NCBI GenBank assembly: GCA_002269645.1
Contig: NIVC01000009.1
Span: 3,124 to 67,123, forward strand
Reading direction: 5' to 3'
From: Macrostomum lignano
Taxonomy: Eukaryota
DNA length: 64,000 nucleotides
Shown here in pieces: positions 1-63,499 of this stretch. The notes under the pieces were generated by a model. That model was not told the origin of the DNA, did no database searches, and was given only the letters and a program-made list of their open reading frames with translations. The position numbers and the translations under genes were made by a program. Each line of letters starts with the position of its first letter. The first letter of the stretch is position 1.

Positions 1-95
1 CTGACTAGCTCACCTGTCAATCATCAACTGACTAGCTCACCTGCAAATCAAAGACTAATCCCAACATCAGTCTAAGAAACAGCTCAATAACTCAC

Positions 96-3000
96 TTTTG
101 TGCTCGGAGAACGCCAGACTGTTGATGGCCACCAGGACCGGTTCCGGGTCCAGGCGGATCTCGAACTGCTCGCTGACCCTCGGCCCGGATTCCGTCTGGC
201 GCTGCAGACTCCGCTGCATGCCGGCCGCCCGGTCCTGCATCGCGGCCGACACCTGCGTGAGGATGGGGGGTGGGAGGTTCCGTTCTAAGCTCGAGTGTGG
301 AGCAGACTGTAGTTTGGAGTGGATAAAGACTGCAGATTGGAGTAGATAAAGACTGTAGTTTATGTAGATTGGATTGGATAAAGATTAGTCTGGAGTGGAT
401 AAAGACTACGAGCTAGTTTGGAATGGATAAAGACTAGTTTGGAGTGGATAAAGACTGTAGATAAGAGTGGATAAAGACTGTAGTTTATGCAGATTGGAGT
501 GAATAAAAACTGTAGTTTATGCAGATTGGAGTGGATAAAGACTGTAGATAGGAGTGGATAAAGACTGTAGTTTATGCAGATTGGAGTGGATAAAGACTGT
601 AGTTTATGCAGATTGGAGTGGATAAAGACTGTAGTTTATGCAGATTGGAATGGATAAAGACTGTAGTTTATGCAGATTGGAATGGATAAAGACTGTAGTT
701 TATGCAGATTGGAATGGATAAAGACTGTAGTTTATGCAGATTGGAGTGGATAAAGACTGTAGATTGAAGTTTGGCCTCAACAAGCCTTCAGCTTTCTCAC
801 CGCGATGAAGGCGGCCGGTTCAGTCTCCCTGAGCAGCTCAACGCACAGCTGCAGCAATCCAGTTGCCTTGGCCAGCGAGGAGGCGCACTGGGCCGCCTGG
901 TCTCTGGTGAGCCTGAGCTTGTGCTCCTGCTCAGATGCCAGCTGGCTCAGCATCACCTGCTTCTTTGACTGCAGAGCAGACACCAGCGAGTCAAACTGCT
1001 CTGTGACCGCTGCAGCCATGACCTCCCGGTTGGACTGGGATAAGTTATATAAATTAATAGATTTGACGCAAATTAGGCACAATATTTTCAATACCAGCAA
1101 TAAATTCACTTTCCTTCTCACCTTGATTCGCTCTGAACTGGATTTCAGCCGCTGCAGGAATTCCGAACCGGATTTTGCTTGCTCTGACAGACTCTGCAGG
1201 GCCTGGGACAGCTCAGTCTGGATTGTTGTTTTGAGGAATAAAATTTGTGGGTAAGTACAAATATGAATATGAATGAATACGAATGATTATATCAATAAAT
1301 GTGAATAAAAATAAGCGTTTATTGACCTGTAAAGACAGGACTTGCTTTTTAATGAAGATAGGGCCTGATGACCTCCTATACAGACAGGGCCTGATGACCT
1401 CCTATACAGACAGGGTCTGATGACCTCCTATACAGACAGGGCCTGATGACCTCCTATACAGACAGGGCCTGATGACCTCCTATACAGACAGGGTCTGATG
1501 ACCTCCTATACAGACAGGGCCTGATGACCTCCTATACAGACAGGGCCTGATGACCTCCTATACAGATAGGGCCTGATCATCTCCTATACAGACAGGGCCT
1601 GATGACCTCCTATACAGACAGGGTCTGATGACCTCCTATACAGACAGGGCCTGATGACCTCCTATACAGACAGGGCCTGATGACCTCCTATACAGACAGG
1701 GCCTGATCATCTCCTATACAGACAGGGCCTGATGACCTCCTATACAGACAGGGCCTGATCATCTCCTATACAGACAGGGCCTGATCATCTCCTATACAGA
1801 CAGGGCCTGATCATCTCCTATACAGACAGGGCCTGATGACTTCCTATACAGACAGGGCCTGATCACCTCCTATACAGACAGGGCCTGATGACCTCCTATA
1901 CAGACAGGGCCTGATGACCTCCTATACAGATAGGGCCTGATCATCTCCTATACAGACAGGGCCTGATGACCTCCTATACAGACAGGGCCTGATGACTGAT
2001 ATCTGACTCGGGCAACGGCAAGCAGTAAAAGTACAATCAAAGGTTAAACTAATTTGATCGGATCGAGGAAAACAACTGGCAATCCAACATACTGGTAATA
2101 CTTATCTATACTTATCAAAGCACTTGCCTGCCCCGCATACCTCAAACTACCGGGAGGAGCTGCCCCAGCTGAACTCCCTGGACTGTAATGAACACGCTTT
2201 GCATGCTTTGTCTCTACGGAGAGGGTGAGGCCGGGTAGCCAAGTGATTGTGATTGAGTGGTGCGCCTCTCCTTGGGGAATTCGTAAGCTCGCACAGCCAT
2301 AAGCGCGCGAAAGTCAACTGCAGGTGGCATCGCAGAGTCGGAAAGAACTGCAGTAGGGGGGGGGGGGTAAATGCAGGTGCCTTCCTTCAAGGGATAAGCG
2401 GCCAAATCTGCAAAAGGAGTTTCCAGGATGGGGGTCGCGGGGCCAAGAGGAGGGCCGCTGACATTTTATCAGCTAGCGGCATCGCGAGCGGCAGCGAGAC
2501 TTCTCGGCGCCAACTGGACCGTCTCCCCGTCTCTCCCTCGGGGAGGGGGGGAAGTGAAGACAGACGATGGCCAGAGAGGAAGCTGGGAAGCTACAGGTAG
2601 GGGCAGGGACCATTTTTTCTTCATCCGATCTGCGTTGTGTTACGCGCGCTTTCGCCCTGGCGCAGTGGGACTAAGGGGGAGGGTGGGCACCGCACTTGGC
2701 ACCTACGGCCTGTGCATTGTGTTGCTTTTTCATTTGCTCTCCCTCATGCGTTTCCTCCCGCTTGCTGGCTGCGCTGCATAATTGGGACTGAAAGAATTCC
2801 GAGGCCACTTCGTCGCCTCTGGAACAACTAAAAGAAGAAGCAGAAACTGCAAAAGAAGAGAAACGAAAAAGCAACAGGCGAACGCATGCGGAGGGCAGGG
2901 AGGCGGGGGCGGGAAGGAGCCTAATGAAGACTTTCGCGCTGCTCGCTCCCAGCCTCCCACTTGTCTTCCATCGCCACCAGCTCTCCGCCGTGTTGCCTGA

Positions 3001-6000
3001 TGTTTATGGCTTTACAGTGGGTGGAAAATAAAGTTTCTATTTTTATTGATATATTATTTATTGCCGAACACTGCTAGCTGGTTGCCGCATGCAGAAGACA
3101 CAGCATCAGAATGAGGAAGCCAGAAAATCCCCTGCTCCAAAACGTAACACTTTGAATATATGAGGGAATTAATTCAAACTGATAAAGTTCTCACTGATTT
3201 CTTCTTACAACAGTGCTAACCTCTGCTGCTTAGAGGATAACCCGCAAGCCGTTGAGCTCTCCCGCTCATTCTTGATGAGGTTTTGGGAGTTTAGGGGAGA
3301 TTTCTACCCTCTTTGATCCCAGCCGTGATGAGAGTGACTGACTGAGCAAAATTTGGGGCAGAGGGGGGGGGGTAACTGGCGGCCAGGGATGCTCAGCAGA
3401 ACAAGGACTTCTAAATAAAGTTATCTGGATTGGAAACCGACCAATCGCTAGACCGTCGAACAATATTATTTAATCTACCTAATTGAAGCTAAGAACTTGA
3501 ATTCTACATTAATACTTTCCTTTGTCCAAGGACTCCTACTCGTAGTATGGACAGCTGAAGTACCTGAATAGAAGAAGGACGCTCCAGACAAGCGTTCTAG
3601 TTAGAGCTCCTTGGCTGAGCCGCCAGACAGATGGCCCGCCGTAATTCATATTGGGAAGCATTGGTGTTGGGGACGGTGCCCTGTGATCCCGTTAATTCCC
3701 ACCCGCGGCATTTTTTTGCTGAAGGTTGCAGCGGGATACGGGAACGGGTTGGACAGAGAGAGGAATGCGCTCCCATCAATTTGGGATTGTTGCATTAAAT
3801 ATTAAATTGGCTTGAATTGCCGGTCAGCCTCTGTGCGTATGCTGGGGCCGGTGCAGATACTGCAGTGCATGGGGACTGTCAAAGAATATAGCTGCTGTCT
3901 AACAGGATATAGCTGCTGTCTAACAGAATATGGCTGCTGTCTAACAGAATTTAGCTGCTGTCTAACAGAATATGGCTGCTGTCTAACAGGATATAGCTAC
4001 TGTCTAACAGAATATGGCTGCTGTCTAACAGAATATAGCTACTGTCTAACAGAATATGGCTGCTGTCTAACAGGATATAGCTACTGTCTAACAGAATATA
4101 GCTGCTGTCTAACCGATAATAGCTGCTGTCTAACAGGATATAGCTACTATCTAACAGAATATAGCTACTGTCTAACAGAATATAGCTGCTGTCTAACAGA
4201 TATTAGCTACTGTCTAACAGAATATAGCTACTGTCTAACAGAATATGGCTGCTGTCTAACAGAATATAGCTACTGCCTAACAGATAATAGCTACTGTCTA
4301 ACAGAATATAGCTACTGTCTAACAGAATATAGCTACTGTCTAACAGGATATAGCTACTATCTAACAGAATATAGCTACTGTCTAACCGATAATAGCTGCT
4401 GTCTAACCGGATATAGCTACTGTCTATCAGAATATAGCTACTGTCTAACAGAATATAGCTACTGTCTAACAGAATATAGCTACTGTCTAACAGAATATAG
4501 CTACTGTCTAACAGAATATGGCTGCTGTCTAACAGAATATAGCTACTGTCTAACAGATAATAGCTACTGTCTAACAGAATATAGCTACTGTGTAACAGAA
4601 TATAGCTACTGTCTAACAGGATATAGCTACTATCTAACAGAATATACCTACTGTCTAACCGATAATCGCTACTGTCTAACAGAATATAGCTACTGTCTAA
4701 CAGGATATAGCTACTGTCTAACCGGATATAGCTACTGTCTAACCGATAATAGCTACTGTCTAACAGAATATTACAGTAACTAAAACCAAGTGGAAGCGTG
4801 CAAGTTGCCACTCAGGAGCGGCAGTTCAGCCCGAGCGAATTCGCCCTTTTAGCCAAGCGCAGTCAGGCAGGAAAACCGGACAGAAGAGCCGGGACCATCT
4901 CTTCAAGGCCGAATGAAGATGACAACGGCCATGGGAAATGGACTGGCAGTGCTTCACCTGGGCTGGGGCTTATGCGAACCGGAGAGCTTTTCGGGACACC
5001 TCAGGTGGAATGAAACCCCCCCCCCGTAGTTGTCTAGTGGGATTTCTTTTCTCCCGGAACTTTGTCCTCAACCAAGGAGATCTAGAGTCAGAAGCTGGAG
5101 AGCCAACTCCTTACTGAACTCCACATTTTCAGACTACTGTAGGCTGATTGCGGCCTGACAAAGCCTTGCATTTTCAGACAACTGTAGGCTGATTGCGGCT
5201 CGACAAAGCCTTGCATTTTCAGACTACTGTAGGCTGATTGCGGCTCGACAAAGCCTTGCATTTTCAGACAACTGTAGGCTGATTGCGGTGACATTAGACA
5301 GACTTGTCCTTCCTTTGTAAACTGAAGAACCGCAGTCGGCCTATAGTTGTCTGAAAATGACAAGTGTTTGATGAGGCCACTCCAGGTTGTGACTGTAGGT
5401 GTCCCTGCCTTCGTAACGCGCGATTGCCACTGCTCCAGTGGGGAGGGGGGGCTCTGAGAAGGGATTCTCTGTAATCCGCATCTGCTGGCATCCCGCAAGA
5501 GCTTATCGAAGCCGCATTGAAGCGGGGCCCGTTGCAGTCTTATCTGCGAACTCCCAGGTGCCGAAATCTGCTCCCACCGCTCCCCAAACGCTGGTAGCTC
5601 CTGCTCTCTGTTTGACTCACATTTGAGGTCAAATCAGTCCAGCCGGCAAGTGCAGCTCAACGAGTTTGGGTGATAAGAATCTGCTAGCAAACAAACTTTG
5701 CACATCGAATAGCTCTCGGGCGGTAAACTGTACGATCTTACAAAGGAAATATATTGATGGTGAGTGCAATCAGAGTCGGTGATGGTGACCTCAAAGTGAG
5801 GTGAAGAATATGCAACTAGGGGTCAAACTGGAGCTGAACTAATAGGCTTGAACCATAGACAATGCAATTGAGCTCCATTATTAGAATTCCAAGGACAACT
5901 AAATTAGGACGGCAAACTATCTCGTAAATTTCTTAGAAAATGTTAGAGGCTGGTTTTCGACGAAAAATACACTACGGAGATAGAAGCTTTCACCTTTTTT

Positions 6001-15700: not shown

Positions 15701-18700
15701 TCGATAGCAACATCCGACTCACGATGCAATGCAGCGGAGAGAAGATTTAATTACTTCCTGGACTGCTGTGTTAGTCTGACTGACGGAGGCAACAAAAAAG
15801 AGACTCGTGCTCTATCTACTTCAAACCCACCGATTCACGCCAGATCTTGCATCTGGAGTCATTTCACTCAAAGCAAACATTCTGTGAAATCTGTTTCTCC
15901 GATACGCTCGCCGTTGCGCATTTAAAAAAGACTCTGATGAGGCCAGCAGCAGCCTAACAAGCATCCTGAAGAAACAAGGATACTCTGTCCGCTTAATCAG
16001 GGATGCTAAGAAATCTGCTCTCATCCTCCCATCCATATAGGCTTCTACATTGAAGGTTGGTGGGAGTTCCGGCTTCGAGGATTGTGGTAATTAAAGCTGT
16101 CGTCTTTGCAGAGAGCACGTACACTTTGGCTAAGTGTTGTCCAGGATCTAGTGCAACAAAAATGAGATAAAAATATTTGTCAGAAATTCCGCTGACTCTA
16201 GAAATGTGGTGTATGCCATTATGTGCAAGACTTGCTATGACTGCTGTATCTACGTCCGTGAGACTGTAGGCGACTTTAAGCATATCAGAGCGACATCAGA
16301 CTGGCTAAGGACACCCCAATCTCCAGACACTTTCGGTCAACAAGCAATCTTCAGTACTTGCGCTTTATGGGTCTGTGGTTCCCCAGTACTTGAGTGCCTG
16401 ACCACTAAATAGGGAACCTAGCGCAGGCGGAGGAATATGGAGCAGATTGCAGAATCTCATCGCTTTACTACTACAGACTCAGACTCTGGGAGGTTTAAAC
16501 ACATGTTATCACTGAAAAAAGCGTCTGTATCACAATAGTGTTTCGTTTCACGGAGCACTCTGGGCGAGTTGTTCACGAAATTCGCACGGCCATTTTGTAC
16601 TTCTATACTCACGACAAATACTACCAATTTTTTTTAATGTGCCGCCCCTTATTACAGCTTTTTTTCTCAATTATACCCTGGCGAAGACCTAGTTTCCGTC
16701 AAAATAATGGTATATTTATTCGAATTTAAATTTTAAAGAAAGGGTGAATTTTTTCGCACTGTGTGTGTCATTTTTCGTCCTATCTTATCTATCTTATCTT
16801 ATATCTTATCTTATATCTTATCTATGACCGAAAGGATAGATAATAGTTAATGCCAGTCAGACTCACCTGTGCCAGGCGGGCCATACAACAGGCAGCCCTT
16901 AGGCGGGGAGATGCCGACACGCTGGAAAAGCTCGGGATTAAGCAGCGGCAATTCGATAACTTCGCGCAGCTCGCGAATCTGCTCGGACAGGCCGCCAATG
17001 CTAGCGTAGGACACGTCGCCGGGATCCTCGGCGCTCATATTATAAACTAGAGGATCTACTTCGCGCGGCAGGCAGCGCATAATAGTCATGGTGGTCATGT
17101 CGAGAGCTACGCGGGTGCCAGACTTCAGCCGTTTCTTGTCGATACTGCGCCGGCAGCCAACAACATAACGCGGCCCATTGGTGGCCTTTACAATGAATTT
17201 CTCCTCGGTTAGCTGGCGAAGCACTTCGCCAACAATTTGGCCAACACTTTGAAGCGCCTTTAGTGCGTCCTCCGACTTGTCGAATTCTTTTGTTAGGTCG
17301 CGGAGTTTTTCGCGAGCTAAACAGAGTTGGGAATAACAAATTGGAAGTGGATTTTTATTGTTTGCCTTGCAAATCAATATTAAATGTACACATTTATAGC
17401 AGACTGTTGTTATATATTGACTTATTATAAGTAACATCTATTGGGCCATACCCTACCCAACACAAAAACAATACCATTCAAGGACTCTTCCTTGAAGGCC
17501 TTTATTGACTATAGTTTATCATTTAAATGATGTGCAAAGTGCAATATTGTTAACCAGATATGGAAGGAAAGAGAACTGGGGTTGGGATAGTTGTTTAATG
17601 TTTTGCTAATGCTAAAAAACTAACTTTTTAATGTTTTTTGCACCTTTAGATTAAGAAAATGAAGAGATAAATGCAAACCTTTTATGGTAGCCTACAGCCT
17701 TTTCTATAGTGAATATAGGGTTAATACAAAATCTGGTGCTATTTTGTTGAGCAGTTTAGGACTTCAATAGCACTATAATTTTATATAGACATATGGACAA
17801 AGTTTTGGCTTTTATAAATTGTTCTATAGTCTTGATAATCATTTTGTCTTGTGGTGTTCCTTTATATAGGGACTAACTGATTTAATTGGTATGGTATCCA
17901 CACTTTTTGGTTCATATGCTTTTTAGTAGAGGTCAGACGGGATTCCGATCCTGATCCCGAAATCTCGGGATCCCAAAGAAAATTGAATTCCCGCGGGACC
18001 AGAATCCTGACCCTAAAAAACTCAAGATTTGGGAACAGGTTTTTTGATTAAAAATTTATAGAATTAGTGATTACTTGAAGGTATTTTGCTTTAACTTGTA
18101 CTCGTTACATTATTTACTTTGTTGGTTACAAAACTTCATATCAATTTCATTGTTTTACTTCTTGATCTTGACAATCTTTTCTCAATTTTGTTTAACTTTA
18201 CATGGACAATACACTAAAAGACCTGATCCCAATTCTCAAATCCCAATCCCGATCCCAATCCCGAGAAAAAAATTATTCCCAATCCCGATCCCGCCCAAAG
18301 ATTTCAATCCCGTCCAACCTCTACTTTTCAGTATTTGATATTTCAGTAGTTGTCTTTTTGGTGCCTAAATTATAAATTAGATTTAGATGCAAAATAGAAA
18401 GTAGGTCCTAATTTAACAATAGATGCTTTGCAATACTTTTTACTTTAAATAACTAAACTATTATTTATTTTGTTGTGCTGAAATTCTATTTTAATTGTGA
18501 ATTTTTAAGTGATAATAACTTTTTAAAAATCAATATTATATAATTTGCTATATTTATAATTTCAATTGAAACTTATATGTATTATTGATAGATTTCATCT
18601 CTACCTAACAAATCTTCTTAGTGTGTATGCTTTGTATAGCATATAGATAGACATTCTGCATAGACATTCTTTGTAATGAGTTTAGGGTAGGCACAAAATT

Positions 18701-32075: not shown

Positions 32076-37156
<5,081 letters not shown>

Positions 37157-45430: not shown

Positions 45431-45987
45431 CTTTAGTCGAAGCTTTACACCTAGCGGGGAAATGGGGATAGGCAAGAAGCTATTTTTCTAAGCCATGCAC
45501 AAGCTTCACTTTTCTTACTCAGAAGCACAACTGCAATGCAAATTACATGCTACCCAGAAGCTACAAGTGTAAAGGCCGCTTCACATCCCGTATAGCAAAC
45601 TGCGGAAGAAATACTCGTACTTCTTTCGTGACTCAATTTTGTGATTCTTTATAAAAAAGACTATTTCACACTGAGTTCGAGACAAATAAAGAAATAAACA
45701 ACTAAATTAATATTTGGTTGAATAATGTAATAGTAAATGATAAAAAATCACTAATGTTAAACGCGTTTATTTAACATTTATTCATACATGTAAAATGTGA
45801 AAAACACGTTTCTGAATGCAGAATACGATTAAACGCAAGTCATGCAAAGATTTTAGAATGGACACGCATTTAGACAATGCAGAAACTTTTACAACTAGCT
45901 CGATCGATGATACATGAAATTGCAAATGTATACTTTGTACAAAGGTTATTCAAGAGACTCAGTCCTTGAAGAATGTGCAGATGATGC

Positions 45988-47904
45988 TCAGTCGACCTCC
46001 TCAACGGTGGGTCCTCCAGCTCGCTGATGTCCAGGCTGAGGCTGACCAGACTGCTGCTGCTGCTGATGAAGCTTGGCCATGATTGGCGAGCAGCGGCTGC
46101 TGAGTTGCTGCTGCTGGTGGGCAATCTCGTCCTTCTCGGCAGTCTGGTTGTTCTCCAGCCAGGAAATCACTTGCTCGCAGGCGGCCACCACCTCGGCGGA
46201 GTCCTTCTCGCCCAGCTTGTCCTTGCAGTCGTTGGCAGCCTGCTTGTACTGGAAGGCGAGCGACTCGAGCTGGTTGCGGGCCGCCAGGCGCTCGCGGTGC
46301 CGCTCGTCCTCCTCGCGGAACTTCTCCGCATCCCGCACCATCCTGTCGATCTCGTCCTTCGAGAGGCGGCCCTTGTCGTTCGTGATCGTGATCTTCTCCT
46401 CCTTGCTGGTGCTCTTGTCTTTCGCCGACACCACCAGGATTCCGTTGGCGTCAACGTCGAAGGTCACCTCGATCTGAGGGACTCCGCGCGGCGCTGGCGG
46501 GATCCCGTCCAGGTTGAACCGGCCCAGCAGGTGGTTGTCTCTGGTGAGCGCTCGCTCGCCCTCGAACACCTGCACCGTGACGCCGCTCTGGTTGTCCGAG
46601 TAGGTGGTGAACGTCTGCGTCGCCTTGGTCGGGATGCGGCTGTTCCGCTCGACAATCTTGGTCATCACCCCGCCGGCGGTCTCGATGCCGAGAGACAGCG
46701 GCGCCACATCCAGCAGCAGCAGGTCGTCGATCTTGTCGTCCTTCACGCCAGTCAGCACCGCAGCCTGCACGGCAGCTCCGTAGGCGACCGCCTCGTCCGG
46801 GTTGATCGACTTGTTCAGCGTCCGACCGCCCATGAATTCTTGCAGCAACTTCTGCACCCTCGGGATCCGGGTTGATCCGCCAACCAGCACGATCTCGTTG
46901 ATGTTGCTCTTGTCCATCTTGGCGTCTCTCAGCGCTCGCTCCACCGGCTCCATCGTCTGGCGAAACAGGTCGGCGCACAGCTCCTCGAATCGAGCCCTGG
47001 TGACGCTCGTGTAAAAATCGATGCCCTCGAACAGCGAGTCAATCTCGATGCTCGCCTGTGCCGAGCTGCTCAGCGTTCGCTTCGCTCGCTCAGCCGCAGT
47101 CCGAAGGCGTCTCACAGCCCGAGCGTTGCCGCTCATGTCCTTGCGGTACTTGCGCTTGAACTCTTGCATCAGGTGCTCAACCAGACGATGATCAAAGTCC
47201 TCGCCGCCGAGGTGGGTGTCGCCGGCGGTTGCGCGCACCTCGAACATGCTGCCCTCCGACACTGTCAGGATGGACACGTCGAACGTGCCGCCTCCCAGGT
47301 CAAAGATGAGAATGTTCTTCTCACCCTGCAGGTTCTTGTCCAGACCGTAGGCCAGTGCCGCAGCAGTCGGCTCGTTCACGATGCGCAGCACGTTCAGTCC
47401 GGCAATCGCCCCGGCATCCTTCGTTGCCTGTCGCTGACTGTCGTTGAAGTAGGCCGGCACTGTGATCACCGCGTCAGACACCTTCTCGCCGAGGTAGGCC
47501 TCCGCCGTCTCCTTCATCTTGGTGAGAACCATGGCGGAGATCTCCTCCGGGTAGAAGCTGCGCCTCTCGCCCATGTACTGCACCTCAATCTTGGGTCGGC
47601 CTCCGTCGTTCGTCACCTTGAATGGCCACAGCTTCATGTCCCTCTGCACCGTCTCGTCTCCGAACTTTCGTCCGATCAGACGCTTCGCGTCAAACACCGT
47701 GTTGTCCGGATTCATCGCCACCTGGTTCTTTGCAGCGTCGCCTACCAGCCTCTCCGTGTCCGTGAAGGCCACGTAGCTGGGAGTGGTTCGGTTGCCCTGG
47801 TCATTGGCAATGATCTCCACTTTGCCTGCCTGGAACACGCCAACGCACGAGTACGTGGTGCCCAGGTCAATGCCGATTGCAGGTCCGTTGTTGCTCTTAC
47901 CCAT
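45988..47904 (-). CDS. HSP70: Cytosolic inducible-type Hsp70, 638 aa, intronless (copy A)
   Basis: [39 protein letters not shown]-terminal GPTVEEVD. Confidence 0.98.
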
Positions 47905-48061
47905 GTTGTCGATCGATTAATTCGCACTTGCTTGATATACGAGTAGTAGCGTAGGCTGATGCGTCTGTTGCCTTGATGGCTTGCTTGGCTTTGCTGTTCG
48001 TTTCGTTCGCCTTGCGATCCGATTTCAATTCTTGCCTCCAATTCTGGGCCGGGTGCTTCTC

Positions 48062-48156
48062 TTTTATAGACTCCGGCCCGTTTCTAGAAGTTTCCCGCAC
48101 CATCCTCCGCGAATGCGCCGCGAGCTATTTTTAGCTCGTTCTGGAAATTTCTCGAA
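48062..48156 (-). promoter_or_regulatory. Hsp70 copy A promoter: TATA box and two heat shock elements
   Basis: Mirror of copy B: TATA 48068-48062, HSEs 48094-48082 and 48156-48139. Confidence 0.9.
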
Positions 48157-48575
48157 AAAAGAATTGCTTGACAAATTTTACCGTTTGCGTCTATTTCGCC
48201 TACTTTAAGTAGAAAGTAACAAACCTGTAGTCTAATATTCTTACAAACATATTTACAATGTTGAATGAATCAAGAAATCCTGTGGAAAATGGGGTTAACG
48301 AATATTAACGATCGTTTTGGTAGCAAAGAATTCATTTTGTTATTCAATATTTATTTGTTAAAACAATCAGGTCTTTCAGATTAACTGATTCTGGAAATCG
48401 GCGATATGTATAGAACAAGCATTGCAAGCACAAAACAAAAGTCAGAAAAGTGCTATGTTTTAAAGCCGACTCAATCTTCTGAAGTGAAACAAAAAGAAAA
48501 TACAAACAGTTAGTCATTTTAATATAATTTTTTAGTTAGTGCTTATTGGAAGTGCACAAAACAAAATGGCAAAAA

Positions 48576-48694
48576 AGACAACAGCATTTGGTATTCCCAG
48601 GCGGTCACCCATCCAAGTACTAACCAAACCCAACGTTGCTTAACTTCGGTGATCAGACGAGAACCGGTGTTTTCAACGTGGTATGGCCGTTGCC
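48576..48694 (-). rRNA. 5S rRNA gene (copy A)
   Basis: Reverse complement GGCAACGGCCATACCACGTTGAAAACACCGGTTCTCGTCTGATCACCGAAGTTAAGC...GGGAATACCAAATGCTGTTGTC, followed by a T6 terminator. Confidence 0.95.
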
Positions 48695-48879
48695 AATTAC
48701 CGAGAGCACTCAACTTCAATTTATACTTTGCTACCGCCGCATTTGTGTCAGTAGGCAATACGTAACGTAAGTAATATGGCCCATTTTGTTTCGACCAAGA
48801 GCCAATAGCCTCCTCGCCTTATCGGGATGATGAATCTACCAATCCTTAATTGATAGTTCTCTCTGCGTTGAATCGACAA

Positions 48880-49965
48880 TCAGATAATGACAGTCAGGTA
48901 ATGGCACTCAGATAATGATCGTCATATAATGACAGTCAGATAATGACAGTCAGATAATGACAGTCAGATAATGACAGTCAGATAATGACAGTCAGATAAT
49001 GACAGTCAGATAATGACAGTCAGATAATGACAGTCAGATAATGACAGTCAGATATGACAGTCCGATAATCACAGTCAGATAATGACAGTCAGGTATGACA
49101 GTCAGATATGACACTCAGATAATGACAGTCAGATAATGAAAGTCAGATAATGAAAGTCAGATATGACAGTCCGATAATGACAGTCAGATAATGACAGTCA
49201 GATATGACAGTCCGATAATCACAGTCAGATAATGACAGTCAGATAATGACAGTCAGGTATGACAGTCAGGTATGACAGTCAGATATGACAGTCAGATAAT
49301 GAAAGTCAGATAAAGACAGTCAGATAATGACAGTCAGATAAAGAAAGTCAGATAATGAAAGTCAGATATGACAGTCCGATAATGACAGTCAGATAATGAC
49401 AGTCAGATATGACAGTCCGATAATCACAGTCAGATAATGACAGTCAGATAATGACAGTCAGGTATGACAGTCAGGTATGACAGTCAGATATGACAGTCAG
49501 ATAATCACAGTCAGATAAAAACAGTCAGATAATGACAGTCATATGACAGTCCGATAATCACAGTCAGATAATGACAGTCAGATATGATAGTCAGATATGA
49601 TAGTCAGATAATGACAGTCAGATAATGACAGTCAGGTATGACAGTCAGATATGATAGTCAGATAGTGACAGTCAGATAATGACAGTCAGATAATGACAGT
49701 CAGATAATGACAGTCAGATAAAGACAGTCAGATAATGACAGTCAGATATGATAGTCAGATATGACAGTCAGATATGACACTCAGATAATGACAGTCAGAT
49801 ATGATAGTCAGATAATGACAGTCAGATAATGACAGTCAGATAATGACAGTCAGATAATGACAGTCAGATAATGACAGTCAGATATGATAGTCAGATAATG
49901 ACAGTCAGATATGACACTCAGATAATGACAGTCAGATAATGAAAGTCAGATAGTGACAGTTCTGA
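48880..49965. repeat. 13-14-bp minisatellite (gataatgacagtca), ~1.08 kb
   Basis: About 78 units with variants (gatatg, gataatcac, ggtatg). Confidence 0.95.
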
Positions 49966-50234
49966 AATCGACATTTAAGATTCCAGGAGTTCACAACGGC
50001 CTTATTCTGCATGGAATCGAAATTTCCATTTCCATTGAGTGCGAAAAGGATGCTTTGCAAAAGTTGAGTTTGGTTCTGGACTCTGACTGCTTTGTTTGAT
50101 TTGCTTGTTTGTTTTTGTTTATTTGGTTGAAATACATGAAATGGAAATAATCCATTATCGGCCCGACTTTTCGGGCCAAAATGAAATCGTCTATGGCAAT
50201 AATCGAATATCAGCCCGCCCGATAGCCACGTAGT

Positions 50235-51670
50235 CATGGTACAATATATATGTTACTCAGGGACAACTAAAACTACCGGGACGCGAAACAAGCCAAGGTG
50301 AAAAAAGTTGGGGGCTCGTTTGAAAGCAGTGTTCTATGGCCGTTCCAACTGCAACTCTTCAGTCTAAAGGGTGGTGAGGGCAAATAAAAAGCCCTCAACT
50401 CGTGTGCGACTGTGAAAAATGTCGAGAAAGTGCAGCGTCTTTAACTGCAGATCAAACTATAACTCAGAAGAAAGCCGAAACGCCCTCAACTCTTGTGCGA
50501 CTGTGAAAAATGTCGAGAAAGTGCAGCGTCTTTAACTGCAGATCAAACTATAACTCAGAAGAAAGCCGAACACGATATTTTCTCTTCCTTGAGATGCACG
50601 AGAACGGGAGCGTTGGAGACAAACCCTACCAAATATTTTTGAGGTAAGAAGGATGTTAATTCTAAGCGATCATACGCTGGTATGCGTGGATGAATTTATT
50701 ACAAACAAATTGTTAAAAATAACCACTGCGATAAAATTTACCATTCTAGAAAGTGACTGAACACATGGACATATGCCAAAAGCACTGGCCAAGTGACACC
50801 CCATGTTGAAGAATGGTCGACATGAAAGACCGAAAGATCCGCCTTCTGTCTTCTCTGGCTTTCCCTCTTCGTGCTTGATACAGACAGACAGACAGACAGT
50901 TTTTATTGCCCTAAACTTCTCCGTTCGCGCATTCGCATACGCCAGTTTTGAACAATAATTGGCAAACTGAATCCAATGGAACCTTAACTATTCAACCGCC
51001 AGGTGCAGACAGTTATATCGGCCAAATGGATGGACGTGATCCGACTGTACAAATCAGAAGAATATCACGTTGTCAAACGAACGGAATTAACCCACGAAGC
51101 TTGCTATCCTTCAGTTCAAGCATACAGAAAAACGAAGGTAACACTCGCTCTCCAAGTCTTCAATGAAAAGGTTGTTGCAGCACTGAAGTGCGACGGCTCC
51201 ATAGACACGACAGTATGAGTCGTCGGCTTACGAATGTTTATTTTAAAGGCCTGGTAAAGCGCTCATCGAAGGTTGCACCTGCGCCGACTACATCGCACGA
51301 CAGAAAGCTACGCAAACTGGAAGGCCAGTGAATTTGCGGTAGAGTTTTTAGTATTCTGTCTTTGGAGTTTCAAATTTTCCAATCCGAAATCTTTCATATC
51401 TAGCTGCTCCTCATCTGGGTTCCTCCTAAAATTCGTTCTGTTTAGTCCTGATTTTCTGTGTTCTATTCTACGAGTACGAGTTGCCGTGTACTTTTGTACA
51501 CACACCATTTCATGCTTTTAAACTTTTTTCTCTTGTGCTTATCTCACATGCTTAAATATATGTAATTTTCGCTCAGTACCCCAGTTTTTCCTATACAGTA
51601 TACAGGTTTCCGTATAAGTTCCTCCTCAAATAAGTTATGTTCAGTTCCGTTCCACGATATATACACCATG
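50235..51670 (+). mobile_element. Decayed P-element-superfamily transposon
   Basis: TIR-like ends CATGGTACAATATATAT / ATATATACACCATG. Fragments: RLK..AVPT (THAP-end-like, ~50325), LVCVDEF (~50680), NNWQTE (~50951), SAKWMDVIRLYKSEE..TELTHEACYP..KVTLALQVFNEKVVAALK (51016-51190). Internal 91-bp tandem duplication at 50391-50570. No clear TSD. Confidence 0.6.
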
Positions 51671-51904
51671 CTAAGTTTAAACCTTTTCTTCGTGAATATC
51701 TCGCGTGTCTAATCGTATGTCATTGTGCTCTGTACGGCCGTTTTTTAGTACCCAAAAAAACAAAAAAACAATATTTAAAACTGAACAAAAACCTTTTAGA
51801 CAAGTTACTGAACCTTTTAAAGCAAAAATAATACTGTGGCCTTAGTCTTTTCAGCAGCTAAGCTAAGCATTTATTGCATGAAAAATCGGGCGCCCATTAC
51901 CTTA

Positions 51905-52162
51905 CCTGACTGTCATTATCTGACTGTCATTATCTGACTGTGATTATCGGACTGTCATATCTGACTGTCATTATCTGACTGTCATTATCTGACTGTCATT
52001 ATCTGACTGTCATTATCTGACTGTCATTATCTGACTGTCATTATCTGACTGTCATTATCTGACTGTCATTATCTGACTGTCATTATCTGACTGTCATTAT
52101 CTGACTGTCATTATATGACGATCATTATCTGAGTGCCATTACCTGACTGTCATTATCTGATT
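51905..52162. repeat. Inverted shorter copy of the 14-bp minisatellite (tgactgtcattatc)
   Basis: Same variant order as 48880-49095 in reverse complement. Confidence 0.95.
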
Positions 52163-52345
52163 GTCGATTCAACGCAGAGAGAACTATCAATTAAGGATTG
52201 GTAGATTCATCATCCCGATAAGGCAAGGAGGCTATTGGCTCTTGGTGGATACAAAATGGGCCATATTACTTACGTTACGTATTGCCTACTGACACAAATG
52301 CGGCGGTAGCGAAGTATAAATTGAAGTTGAGTGCTCTCGGTAATT

Positions 52346-52464
52346 GGCAACGGCCATACCACGTTGAAAACACCGGTTCTCGTCTGATCACCGAAGTTAA
52401 GCAACGTTGGGTTTGGTTAGTACTTGGATGGGTGACCGCCTGGGAATACCAAATGCTGTTGTCT
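52346..52464 (+). rRNA. 5S rRNA gene (copy B)
   Basis: 119-nt 5S sequence with A-box (AGTTAAGC) and C-box (TGGATGGGTGACC); terminal helix GGCAACGGC/GCTGTTGTC; TATAAA at about -31 to -26. Confidence 0.95.
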
Positions 52465-52469
52465 TTTTT
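52464..52469 (+). terminator. Pol III oligo-T terminator of 5S copy B
   Basis: TTTTTT directly after the 5S 3' end; mirror A6 at 48571-48576. Confidence 0.85.
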
Positions 52470-52883
52470 GCCATTTTGTTTTGTGCACTTCCAATAAGCA
52501 CTAACTAAAAAATTATATTAAAATGACTAACTGTTTGTATTTTCTTTTTGTTTCACTTCAGAAGATTGAGTCGGCTTTAAAACATAGCACTTTTCTGACT
52601 TTTGTTTTGTGCTTGCAATGCTTGTTCTATACATATCGCCGATTTCCAGAATCAGTTAATCTGAAAGACCTGATTGTTTTAACAAATAAATATTGAATAA
52701 CAAAATGAATTCTTTGCTACCAAAACGATCGTTAATATTCGTTAACCCCATTTTCCACAGGATTTCTTGATTCATTCAACATTGTAAATATGTTTGTAAG
52801 AATATTAGACTACAGGTTTGTTACTTTCTACTTAAAGTAGGCGAAATAGACGCAAACGGTAAAATTTGTCAAGCAATTCTTTT

Positions 52884-52978
52884 TTCGAGAAATTTCCAGA
52901 ACGAGCTAAAAATAGCTCGCGGCGCATTCGCGGAGGATGGTGCGGGAAACTTCTAGAAACGGGCCGGAGTCTATAAAA
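52884..52978 (+). promoter_or_regulatory. Hsp70 copy B promoter: 4-unit HSE, 3-unit HSE, TATA
   Basis: TTCgaGAAatTTCcaGAA (52884-52901), GAAacTTCtaGAA (52946-52958), TATAAAA (52972-52978). Confidence 0.92.
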
Positions 52979-53135
52979 GAGAAGCACCCGGCCCAGAATT
53001 GGAGGCAAGAATTGAAATCGGATCGCAAGGCGAACGAAACGAACAGCAAAGCCAAGCAAGCCATCAAGGCAACAGACGCATCAGCCTACGCTACTACTCG
53101 TATATCAAGCAAGTGCGAATTAATCGATCGACAAC

Positions 53136-55052
53136 ATGGGTAAGAGCAACAACGGACCTGCAATCGGCATTGACCTGGGCACCACGTACTCGTGCGTTGG
53201 CGTGTTCCAGGCAGGCAAAGTGGAGATCATTGCCAATGACCAGGGCAACCGAACCACTCCCAGCTACGTGGCCTTCACGGACACGGAGAGGCTGGTAGGC
53301 GACGCTGCAAAGAACCAGGTGGCGATGAATCCGGACAACACGGTGTTTGACGCGAAGCGTCTGATCGGACGAAAGTTCGGAGACGAGACGGTGCAGAGGG
53401 ACATGAAGCTGTGGCCATTCAAGGTGACGAACGACGGAGGCCGACCCAAGATTGAGGTGCAGTACATGGGCGAGAGGCGCAGCTTCTACCCGGAGGAGAT
53501 CTCCGCCATGGTTCTCACCAAGATGAAGGAGACGGCGGAGGCCTACCTCGGCGAGAAGGTGTCTGACGCGGTGATCACAGTGCCGGCCTACTTCAACGAC
53601 AGTCAGCGACAGGCAACGAAGGATGCCGGGGCGATTGCCGGACTGAACGTGCTGCGCATCGTGAACGAGCCGACTGCTGCGGCACTGGCCTACGGTCTGG
53701 ACAAGAACCTGCAGGGTGAGAAGAACATTCTCATCTTTGACCTGGGAGGCGGCACGTTCGACGTGTCCATCCTGACAGTGTCGGAGGGCAGCATGTTCGA
53801 GGTGCGCGCAACCGCCGGCGACACCCACCTCGGCGGCGAGGACTTTGATCATCGTCTGGTTGAGCACCTGATGCAAGAGTTCAAGCGCAAGTACCGCAAG
53901 GACATGAGCGGCAACGCTCGGGCTGTGAGACGCCTTCGGACTGCGGCTGAGCGAGCGAAGCGAACGCTGAGCAGCTCGGCACAGGCGAGCATCGAGATTG
54001 ACTCGCTGTTCGAGGGCATCGATTTTTACACGAGCGTCACCAGGGCTCGATTCGAGGAGCTGTGCGCCGACCTGTTTCGCCAGACGATGGAGCCGGTGGA
54101 GCGAGCGCTGAGAGACGCCAAGATGGACAAGAGCAACATCAACGAGATCGTGCTGGTTGGCGGATCAACCCGGATCCCGAGGGTGCAGAAGTTGCTGCAA
54201 GAATTCATGGGCGGTCGGACGCTGAACAAGTCGATCAACCCGGACGAGGCGGTCGCCTACGGAGCTGCCGTGCAGGCTGCGGTGCTGACTGGCGTGAAGG
54301 ACGACACGATCGACGACCTGCTGCTGCTGGATGTGGCGCCGCTGTCTCTCGGCATCGAGACCGCCGGCGGGGTGATGACCAAGATTGTCGAGCGGAACAG
54401 CCGCATCCCGACCAAGGCGACGCAGACGTTCACCACCTACTCGGACAACCAGAGCGGCGTCACGGTGCAGGTGTTCGAGGGCGAGCGAGCGCTCACCAGA
54501 GACAACCACCTGCTGGGCCGGTTCAACCTGGACGGGATCCCGCCAGCGCCGCGCGGAGTCCCTCAGATCGAGGTGACCTTCGACGTTGACGCCAACGGAA
54601 TCCTGGTGGTGTCGGCGAAAGACAAGAGCACCAGCAAGGAGGAGAAGATCACGATCACGAACGACAAGGGCCGCCTCTCGAAGGACGAGATCGACAGGAT
54701 GGTGCGGGATGCGGAGAAGTTCCGCGAGGAGGACGAGCGGCACCGCGAGCGCCTGGCGGCCCGCAACCAGCTCGAGTCGCTCGCCTTCCAGTACAAGCAG
54801 GCTGCCAACGACTGCAAGGACAAGCTGGGCGAGAAGGACTCCGCCGAGGTGGTGGCCGCCTGCGAGCAAGTGATTTCCTGGCTGGAGAACAACCAGACTG
54901 CCGAGAAGGACGAGATTGCCCACCAGCAGCAGCAACTCAGCAGCCGCTGCTCGCCAATCATGGCCAAGCTTCATCAGCAGCAGCAGCAGTCTGGTCAGCC
55001 TCAGCCTGGACATCAGCGAGCTGGAGGACCCACCGTTGAGGAGGTCGACTGA
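53136..55052 (+). CDS. HSP70: Cytosolic inducible-type Hsp70, 638 aa, intronless (copy B)
   Basis: Same as copy A except one residue (KDDTIDD vs KDDKIDD). Confidence 0.98.
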
Positions 55053-56717
55053 GCATCATCTGCACATTCTTCAAGGACTGAGTCTCTTGAATAACCTTTG
55101 TACAAAGTATACATTTGCAATTTCATGTATCATCGATCGAGCTAGTTGTAAAAGTTTCTGCATTGTCTAAATGCGTGTCCATTCTAAAATCTTTGCATGA
55201 CTTGCGTTTAATCGTATTCTGCATTCAGAAACGTGTTTTTCACATTTTACATGTATGAATAAATGTTAAATAAACGCGTTTAACATTAGTGATTTTTTAT
55301 CATTTACTATTACATTATTCAACCAAATATTAATTTAGTTGTTTATTGTCATTTCTCACATGGCATATGCATGGCGATCGTTTAGGGACGGTCTAACGGG
55401 ATTACAATGGATATTAACTCGGACTTGCTGGCCTATCTATACATGTTAGTCCAGTACCCGTTTCTCCCAGTCCCAGCCAATTCAGAGGAGAGTTCATATA
55501 CATTTTACGGTATTCATATTATTTAAATGCTTACTGAAGGAACTGAAGAACTAATCACAATTCGCAATTTTCTCATGCGCCCATTCTTTCTCTAGAGTAA
55601 TTTCTCAGACAAGCTTTAATTCTAACGTCCTTATAATTTCATGGACATGACCTGTCGCTGTAACACTCATTTGAACCTCCTGCGCTGTAAGCAAATTTTT
55701 TTGCGACAACTCTTGCACTGTCGACGTCCCCATGTATACAGGTTGTACATAATGCTTGCAATACATGTATATTAAACACCTGTTTATAATACATAAAGCA
55801 TATTTTAGAAAACAAATTGCAGTCTGAAAAAGTACTGAGTTTCACTAAGGGTATACATATACCATAGATTTTAAGAGCTGGCTTTATGTTCATTTTGATG
55901 TTACAAGTACACTGATACATGCAGCTGTAACTATACCAATACTATATATACATTGTACCATATCCAACCGTTGAGTAATTTTATGGACGATCCAATTGAT
56001 CGGACATACAGTCTGCATGCACTACATAGATTCGGTTCTGAACCGGAATCGAGAATACGAAAAAGGTCATTGGTTTAGATCGACAAAGCCAGAAGAGAAG
56101 AAACAAATATGGGGATCCAACTGGCTCTGGTTCCGAAAGTACTATAGAATCAATAGAATCGATACTTAAAGTATTACCCAACAACTGTAAATAAGCAATT
56201 AATTTCAAAAGTGAATGACTCCGTAAATTAAAAACAGTAAAACATAGTTTATATATTACTTTTACGTATTGACTTTTAATTTACATTGAAGTTTTTGTTA
56301 AAATATGTAATAATTTACAAAATTTTAAACTTTCCAAGAAAAATCTAAGAAAAGCTCAACAACTTAAAATAGTACCTCTTGGTCCTTTTGTAAGCATGAG
56401 GAACAAGATGAATAACTATCTTTATGATCTTAATTTCGAAATATATTAGAAGTAATTTCTGGTGTTCTTAACTGTTAGGAATTATAAACGCGAGTTAAAA
56501 ACAATGAAAATATACAATGTTCTTAGACTTAAAACAACGAAAAGAGTTTTGTCATTGCGTGATTATTGTCTACAGGAACTACACTACTGTATTAAATTGG
56601 TCGTTTGCTCTTGGTACAAAAAGCCTTACTTAATATCTACCTATTTAAATCCAGAATAGGTGCCAATTACAAAGTCGATGCACACGTTTTACTATAATTT
56701 TTTAAATGGTAACTATA

Positions 56718-57729: not shown

Positions 57730-63430
<5,701 letters not shown>

Positions 63431-63499
63431 GTAATGAGGATTGGCTTAGGGCTCCGCTTGGGGCTGCTGATTTGCACTGTGGTTCTTGCGAGCAAGAGT

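Follow-up and report, generated by a model that had tools for sequence, protein, structure and literature searches.

The 5S rRNA genes and the divergent Hsp70 pair

We have analyzed a stretch of 64,000 nucleotides from the genome of Macrostomum lignano (GenBank assembly GCA_002269645.1, contig NIVC01000009.1, positions 3,124 to 67,123 of the forward strand), referred to as the window throughout, in which a 5S rRNA gene lies upstream of each of two divergently oriented Hsp70 genes. Positions are those of the window, the counterpart of a right-arm feature in the left arm is given as its mirror, and the means of detection closes each line of the following list.

45693-49054, minus strand: left arm of the inverted repeat (repeat search)
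45988-47904, minus strand: intronless Hsp70 gene of the left arm, 638 amino acids, Lys at codon 391 as in UniProt A0A1I8I8J9 (open reading frame (ORF) and translation)
48576-48694, minus strand: 5S rRNA gene of the left arm, identical mirror copy (Rfam RF00001, 116.5 bits)
51986-55347, plus strand: right arm of the inverted repeat, composed of the minisatellite edge, 5S gene, spacer, promoter, Hsp70 gene and 295 nt of 3' flank (repeat search)
52316-52324 (mirror 48716-48724), plus strand: promoter-like element TATAAATTG upstream of the 5S gene, at -30 (read from the sequence)
52346-52464, plus strand: 5S rRNA gene of the right arm (Rfam RF00001, 116.5 bits, E = 5e-25, model positions 1-120)
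52464-52469 (mirror 48571-48576), plus strand: RNA polymerase III (Pol III) terminator, a run of six T (T6) (sequence and listing of T runs)
52470-52883, plus strand: AT-rich spacer of 414 nt which separates the 5S gene from the distal heat-shock element (HSE), GC 0.35 (blastn and composition)
52884-52901 (mirror 48139-48156), plus strand: distal HSE, four contiguous nGAAn/nTTCn units (regular-expression matches at 52884 and 52889)
52946-52958 (mirror 48082-48094), plus strand: proximal HSE, three units (regular-expression match)
53136-55052, plus strand: intronless Hsp70 gene of the right arm, 638 amino acids, Thr at codon 391 (ORF and translation)

A covariance-model scan of the whole window with RF00001, the gathering score of which is 38 bits, returned exactly two full-length 5S rRNA genes, both far above threshold, and the left-arm and right-arm genes are 100% identical over 125 nt (blastn). 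A first, sequence-only reading of this DNA had described an intact-looking 5S gene with A and C boxes, an upstream TATAAA, a T6 terminator and a TTTGG/CCAAA helix; the Rfam score and inspection of the sequence bear this out in every part. The helices contain only standard pairs, none being flagged as non-standard in the cmscan alignment, and in the TTTGG/CCAAA helix both strands are altered with respect to the CCTGG/CCAGG of Xenopus. Within the internal control region, which is intact, the C-box stretch TGGTTAGTACTTGGATGGGTGACCGCCTGGGAATACC is one position off the Xenopus somatic 5S gene. The control-region and helix comparisons with Xenopus are to be taken as indicative. The upstream TATAAA occupies 52316-52321, which corresponds to -30 to -25 relative to the right-arm gene, and the T6 of this gene is followed, within at most 20 nt, by extra T4 runs at 52474 and 52479 which represent back-up terminators. 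Since all of the known promoter elements are present, Pol III can probably transcribe the 5S gene, the mature product of which could not be told apart from the 5S RNA of the main tandem array. Between the gene and the HSE there are 11 runs of at least four T which, together with the strong terminators, make read-through of Pol III into the Hsp70 promoter and its HSEs unlikely, and a read-through explanation was rejected on this ground. Neither Rfam nor blastn with the 5S gene detected a further 5S copy or fragment in the window besides these two, which leaves the neighborhood without an additional 5S gene for 46 kb to the left and 9 kb to the right.

Both Hsp70 ORFs are uninterrupted and terminate in EEVD, as is typical of the cytosolic type, and their top matches are Hsp70 and Hsp68 proteins with the PF00012 domain. 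The right-arm protein is 92-96% identical to the M. lignano Hsp70 models and approximately 74% identical to the inducible Hsp70/Hsp68 proteins of molluscs and arthropods, and its gene is followed by AATAAA signals at 55258 and 55269. Downstream of the proximal HSE there is a TATAAAA at 52972. The 64 kb contain perfect three-unit HSEs at 52884, 52889 and 52946 and at the mirrors of these positions, and nowhere else; the expectation from shuffled sequences is 0.67 +/- 0.85. The sequence features of a heat-inducible Hsp70 gene, i.e., HSEs of at least three units, a TATA box and an intronless ORF, are all found here, and by its HSEs and TATA box the gene is predicted to be heat-inducible; heat-shock RNAseq data for M. 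lignano have been published (bioRxiv 10.1101/2024.12.18.629116). The sequence-only reading had also placed the 5S gene on the same strand as Hsp70 and upstream of both the distal HSE and the ATG, and measurement from the 3' end of the right-arm 5S gene confirms this with distances of 420 nt to the distal HSE and 672 nt to the ATG. The spacer in between (52471-52880) has as its sole matches in the window itself and its mirror, the latter at 100% (blastn).

Some of the deposited protein models of M. lignano derive from this locus. The UniProt models P0017 and P0245 begin with the exact translation of 52916-53140, i.e., of the promoter and the 5' untranslated region (5'UTR), with a 100% match. 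P0245 (A0A1I8I9J3, "Secreted protein"), P0017, P0244 and P0246 are chimeric or frameshifted models which are mis-annotated and contain translated promoter and 5'UTR; P0245 also joins an Hsp70 read in antisense to one read in sense.

One inverted repeat with two 5S-Hsp70 units

Each 5S-Hsp70 unit is one arm of the same inverted duplication, and the pair represents one event, not two independent observations. The arms are 3,362 nt long and, with five mismatches, 99.85% identical. They span from 295 nt 3' of the Hsp70 stop codon, an outer edge located approximately 75 nt beyond the poly(A) signals, to about 1.15 kb 5' of the ATG. On the far side of the 5S gene the homology continues for a further 180 nt, into a 14-bp minisatellite, and it follows that the 5S gene either predates the duplication or was carried by conversion, and was not inserted twice. 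The sequence-only reading had spoken of a 5S gene physically coupled to each Hsp70 promoter. Both copies are indeed present, but to count them separately overstates the case, as they belong to a 3,362-nt inverted repeat with five mismatches and thus to one event. The pair itself shows what is characteristic of inverted Hsp70 pairs, namely divergent copies with a near-identity that reaches beyond the coding sequence.

The five mismatches, at right-arm positions 52225, 52247, 52250, 52311 and 54307, are far from evenly distributed. Only one of them is coding and accounts for the Lys/Thr difference at Hsp70 codon 391. The remaining four fall within about 90 nt directly upstream of the 5S TATA (52225-52311; mirror 48729-48815), and there are none at all across 52312-54306, the stretch which contains the 5S gene, so that the zone of perfect identity begins 5 nt upstream of the 5S TATA. 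Expressed as a rate, mismatches amount to 2.2% in the 180 nt preceding the 5S gene versus 0.03% in the rest of the arm, and the probability of finding four out of five within those 180 nt under a uniform rate is approximately 4e-5. Of the three proposals of the sequence-only reading, this distribution fits that of a concerted evolution common to the 5S gene and Hsp70, the gene being located inside the mismatch-free stretch and four of the five differences just outside it; the other two, a heat-shock promoter kept accessible and insulated by the 5S gene and a 5S gene which is itself heat-regulated, are not shown by anything in the data. Such a pattern would be expected from conversion tracts which have the gene at their center and thin out as the inner edge of the repeat is approached, and the clustering at this edge appears to favor gene conversion over a very recent duplication, two scenarios which one locus cannot separate.

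For a structure of this kind an assembly artefact has to be considered, in the sense that the palindrome or the placement of the 5S genes could be the result of a mis-join or of polishing. Polishing with short reads can over-homogenize near-identical inverted arms, and the genome is very rich in repeats, with 24% of the window made up of tandem repeats. Against this, the arms carry five real differences and enclose a 2.9-kb spacer which is not palindromic, and the flanks of the 5S gene are unique sequence continuous with the promoter. Furthermore, the older, independent annotation of M. lignano contains the model P0245, which runs from an antisense Hsp70 through the same promoter into a sense Hsp70; this chimera implies that the older, independently built assembly also carried the divergent pair. 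An artefact is therefore considered extremely improbable.

Origin of the 5S copy and search for the link elsewhere

The published fluorescence in situ hybridization (FISH) primers for M. lignano 5S rDNA, 5SF and 5SR (PMC7013459), match the 5S gene of the window exactly. With these primers a polymerase chain reaction (PCR) unit of 1,645 bp was reported, together with a single FISH cluster at the end of chromosome MLI2 (PMC7013459), and according to the authors a few 5S copies elsewhere would escape FISH (PMC7013459; PMC5704211). Because the main 5S cluster is composed of tandem units of approximately 1.65 kb located elsewhere, and because the window holds no more 5S genes, the Hsp70-linked 5S gene is a solitary copy outside the main tandem array.

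Other 5S loci were sought by using as a protein query a spurious 71-amino-acid ORF which runs through the 5S gene, and this identified 481 ORFs containing 5S sequence, none of which was an M. lignano entry. The closest 5S relative among those ORFs was in contig L006 (ENA ERZ27313526, positions 467-622; 97.6% identical), which shows one mismatch to the M. lignano 5SF primer and is probably from another macrostomid or a variant copy. The flanks of this gene cannot be aligned with the window, with the exception of TATAAATTG at the identical -30 spacing and of the T6 terminator. The presence of TATAAATTG at the same spacing despite unrelated flanks indicates that it is a real, lineage-typical upstream promoter element. 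No HSE or Hsp70 gene was found within the 677 nt downstream of the L006 5S gene. A different arrangement was seen in another ENA metagenome contig (L004, positions 1-5040), where a 5S tandem array with a period of 186 nt lies directly beside about 20 tRNA genes within 5 kb and forms with them a dense cluster of Pol III genes.

At the 5S gene of the window there is neither a poly-A tail nor a SINE (short interspersed nuclear element) body, and the search for insertion signatures in the surrounding 850 nt yielded just 8-9-nt repeats at chance frequency, with no convincing target-site duplication. Two candidates were rejected as being at the frequency expected by chance in 850 nt: a 9-nt inverted pair at 52251/52471 as terminal inverted repeats, and an 8-nt direct pair at 52157/52670 as target-site duplications. 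The retained upstream element, the lack of both a poly-A tail and a SINE body, and flanking repeats at chance level argue for the gene having been copied as DNA and not through RNA, with the tandem array as its putative source. Its reading as a SINE or retropseudogene was also rejected, since the complete gene is followed at once by the T6, there is no poly-A and no other copy is present in the window. Scattered SINE-like 5S copies, which the sequence-only reading had named as the finding that would reduce the proximity to chance, are not what the 64 kb contain, as there is no other copy or fragment in them.

The intactness of the 5S gene, inclusive of a lineage-typical upstream element, could be taken to mean that the benefit runs from Hsp70 to 5S, i.e., that the 5S gene persists or is expressed thanks to the open heat-shock promoter, possibly being accessible in stress, while the regulation of Hsp70 is unaffected. 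In support of such a scenario, active Pol III genes are commonly found near active Pol II promoters in mammals. In addition, a preprint describes the binding of HSP70 protein to Pol III transcripts and a role of this protein in the regulation of Pol III (bioRxiv 10.1101/2023.04.10.536203). On the other hand, two extra copies beside a large tandem array add little 5S RNA, and a recent origin or conversion would account for the intactness just as well, which makes this reversed benefit quite improbable.

The occurrence of the link outside this locus was addressed by a search of further Hsp70 loci, all of them distant ones with no close relative of M. lignano among them. Not one of 80 metagenomic Hsp70 loci scanned with nhmmer, for which the positive controls worked, had a 5S gene close to Hsp70; 17 of them, those with at least 700 nt of upstream sequence, were additionally scanned with Rfam. 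The same negative result was obtained for a 31-kb region of Schistosoma mattheei which holds three Hsp70 genes, for the 10 kb upstream of Hsp70 in Hymenolepis diminuta and for the 10 kb on either side of Hsp70 on one animal contig. The nearest genomic relative of the Hsp70 gene (L001, a 2.8-kb contig; 85% protein identity) has HSEs and a TATA box, and its 422 nt of upstream sequence end short of -672; the near relatives L002 and L003 are contigs of transcript length. A query with the N-terminal part of Hsp70, aimed at contigs extending upstream, returned no close relative, the identity being 85% at most. Within M. lignano the models P0008, P0018 and P0241, with approximately 92% identity and a different 5'UTR, mark a paralogous Hsp70 locus, and a second locus is to be expected from the recent whole-genome duplication of this species. 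The N-terminal extensions of these three models contain no translated 5S or upstream sequence of the window and are uninformative on a 5S gene at that locus. Full-text searches of the literature found no paper on a linkage of 5S and Hsp70, nor on the 5S copy number of M. lignano. The 5S-Hsp70 link is thus not general, and it appears to be unreported. For the lack of the link at other Hsp70 loci and in relatives, which the sequence-only reading had named as a refuting outcome, this means that the absence holds for all of the distant loci compared, and that those loci are no close relatives. The S. mattheei cluster also differs in architecture from the inverted pair of M. lignano, as its contig (L087, positions 10001-31436) carries at least three tandem Hsp70 genes on the same strand in 21 kb, with two matches to the mir-3492 family nearby and no 5S.

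A probable passenger or a possible boundary element

The region enclosed by the two arms is composed of repeats and of what may be the remains of a transposon.

51902-52165, no strand assigned: 14-bp minisatellite (TTATCTGACTGTCA)n, inward of the right 5S gene (Tandem Repeats Finder (TRF))
49961-51901, no strand assigned: unique central spacer with a putative decayed THAP/P-element-like transposon remnant (TRF, ORFs and Pfam)

The counterpart of the 14-bp minisatellite (GACAGTCAGATAAT) is located on the inner side of the left 5S gene, at 48875-49960. The lengths of the two are highly unequal, with 1,086 nt on the left versus 264 nt on the right, which places the inner boundary of the repeat within an array that has since expanded or contracted. 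Within 50387-51218 there are two 91-bp units, each of which starts an ORF (MSRKCSVFNCRSNY / MSRKCSVFNC) with a THAP-like CX4C start, and Pfam gave a weak match to TNP-like_GBD at 51003-51218 (E = 0.0045, below the curated cut-off). The element looks like a decayed transposon of the P-element/THAP9 type which lies between two heat-shock promoters. The order on both sides is the same, first the minisatellite and transposon spacer, then the 5S gene and then the promoter with its HSEs, and the two 5S genes bracket in this way a 3.65-kb spacer filled with repeats and transposon.

Tandem repeats are not confined to this spacer: they make up 24% of the 64 kb and give 71 TRF rows, with dozens of unrelated minisatellite families of units of 14-60 bp in addition to (TGAC)n and (TGTC)n tracts at 32961-33510 and 36213-36449. 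Likely exons of neighboring genes are found for a VPS13-like N-terminal region on the plus strand (60879-63434, E = 4e-15 and 9e-6) and for a proteasomal ATPase OB domain on the minus strand (16847-17437, E = 1e-12).

The position of each 5S gene between the spacer and a promoter is that of a barrier or insulator, where a stable, nucleosome-free complex of TFIIIA, TFIIIC, TFIIIB and Pol III bound to the 5S gene would halt the silent chromatin of the central spacer and keep the promoters poised. All elements of a type-1 promoter are intact, so that the control region could recruit TFIIIC via TFIIIA, and the mismatch-free zone starts right at the 5S promoter. In fission yeast, inverted-repeat boundaries with TFIIIC sites flank heterochromatin, a precedent which counts for a barrier. 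Barrier activity is well established for Pol III genes and TFIIIC sites, and neighboring Pol II genes are influenced by Pol III complexes (PMC12409998, PMC4370569, PMC4228148). These arguments have to be weighed against a single locus with a single duplication event, the lack of a 5S gene at every other Hsp70 locus examined, and a position that, taken alone, is equally expected of a passive passenger. Moreover, the only direct experiment found on ectopic 5S rDNA, carried out in mouse cells, showed repression of the linked reporter rather than protection (PMC3261910), which makes the direction of any effect of 5S on Hsp70 uncertain. Overall, a barrier function seems rather unlikely. Its strongest form, a selected mirror-image Pol III/TFIIIC boundary module which fences the spacer, keeps both promoters poised and is conserved across Macrostomum paralogues and species, we regard as decidedly unlikely.

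The opposite effect would be a repressive one, in which the 5S gene pulls the locus to the nucleolar periphery, or Pol III-mediated silencing lowers the basal expression of Hsp70 until heat shock. The 5S gene is located 420 nt from the HSE, and in yeast tRNA genes are known to silence Pol II promoters which lie at most a few hundred bp away. In mammalian cells a 119-bp 5S rDNA raised nucleolar association in addition to repressing the linked reporter (PMC3261910). Heat-shock promoters are, however, normally open and paused, which is a poor fit with a silencing neighbor, and the sequence says nothing on nuclear position for what is a sample of one locus. Such tethering is accordingly very improbable.

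In our view the linkage is probably incidental, and the data are best accounted for, with somewhat better than even confidence, by a solitary intact 5S copy which was duplicated and homogenized together with Hsp70 as a passenger, with no need for a regulatory explanation. The sequence of events would have started when a solitary 5S gene reached the region 5' of Hsp70 through a DNA-level copy which retained the TATA element at -30 and the terminator. The segment composed of the 5S gene, the 414-nt spacer, the promoter with its HSEs, Hsp70 and the 3' flank would then have been duplicated in inverted orientation, and the arms would since have been held near-identical, most likely via gene conversion between them, a process known from the inverted Hsp70 pairs of insects, with the 5S gene carried along in the conversion unit of Hsp70. 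Heat-shock promoters, which are constitutively open, are documented as insertion hotspots in Drosophila (PMC2793543), and the putative transposon remnant is located in the same intergenic spacer as the 5S genes. Inverted Hsp70 pairs evolving in concert are described in Diptera (PMC3071340).

Several points weigh against a passenger. The lone 5S copy outside the array shows no disabling change. It sits exactly between the repeat and transposon spacer and each of the promoters, the same arrangement that a barrier model predicts. The mismatch pattern could equally reflect constraint or selection on the 5S-Hsp70 unit, an interpretation with which an identity zone starting 5 nt upstream of the 5S TATA is just as compatible. 

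Should the 5S gene be no more than a passenger, the locus still illustrates neatly how a Pol III gene can be drawn into the conversion unit of two Pol II genes, and it is also a case of the solitary M. lignano 5S genes which are invisible to FISH. If it is functional, we would have here an animal in which a 5S gene at its native locus serves as the chromatin boundary or modulator of a heat-shock promoter, and in the case of a true boundary module a 5S rRNA gene would be the dedicated insulator of an animal stress-gene locus. The significance would rise sharply if the arrangement were conserved across Macrostomum paralogues and species. M. lignano is unusually well suited to functional tests because stable transgenesis and a heat-shock reporter system exist (PMC6371448; PMC8717057). 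On the practical side, anyone cloning this Hsp70 promoter as an inducible driver will need to decide on the inclusion of the 5S gene.

When compared to known systems, the 5S gene of the window resembles dispersed, orphon-type 5S copies in being a single complete gene with promoter elements and terminator away from the FISH cluster; in silico surveys find such dispersed copies where FISH detects clusters only (PMC6562748; PMC5704211). It differs from these in being located within the homogenized unit of a protein-coding pair and in forming a mirror-image pair which brackets the intergenic spacer. With 5S genes linked to 45S rDNA, histone, spliced-leader or U-snRNA (small nuclear RNA) repeats it has in common that 5S shares a repeat unit and its homogenization with another gene. 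In those cases, however, the unit is tandemly iterated, contains much or all of the 5S complement and has a high-copy family as the partner. The window, in contrast, holds two copies in inverted orientation with Hsp70 as the partner, and the main 5S array is located elsewhere in the genome; a shared homogenized unit is thus found in the window, and tandem iteration and the bulk of the 5S genes are not. SINEs and retropseudogenes derived from 5S are similar in representing 5S sequence outside the array, and differ from the window, where the full 119-nt gene is followed by T6, no unrelated body or tail is attached, the TATA is kept and no other copies occur in 64 kb. Barriers based on Pol III or TFIIIC, such as tDNA insulators and the inverted-repeat boundaries of fission yeast, share the mirror-image sites for Pol III factors between repeat or transposon DNA and a promoter; most of the characterized ones are tRNA genes or B-box arrays and not 5S genes. 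The inverted Hsp70 pairs of Drosophila and Stratiomyidae are also composed of head-to-head intronless genes with HSEs, TATA boxes and a near-identity extending into promoters and flanks (PMC3071340, PMC3924832). The pair in the window differs from other inverted pairs in that its conversion unit extends to a Pol III gene, which is located 420 nt 5' of the HSEs. Divergent inverted Hsp70 pairs evolving in concert are also present in mosquitoes. What M. lignano offers with this 5S-Hsp70 arrangement is therefore no new kind of feature but a further case of two familiar ones, the dispersed 5S gene and the inverted Hsp70 pair.

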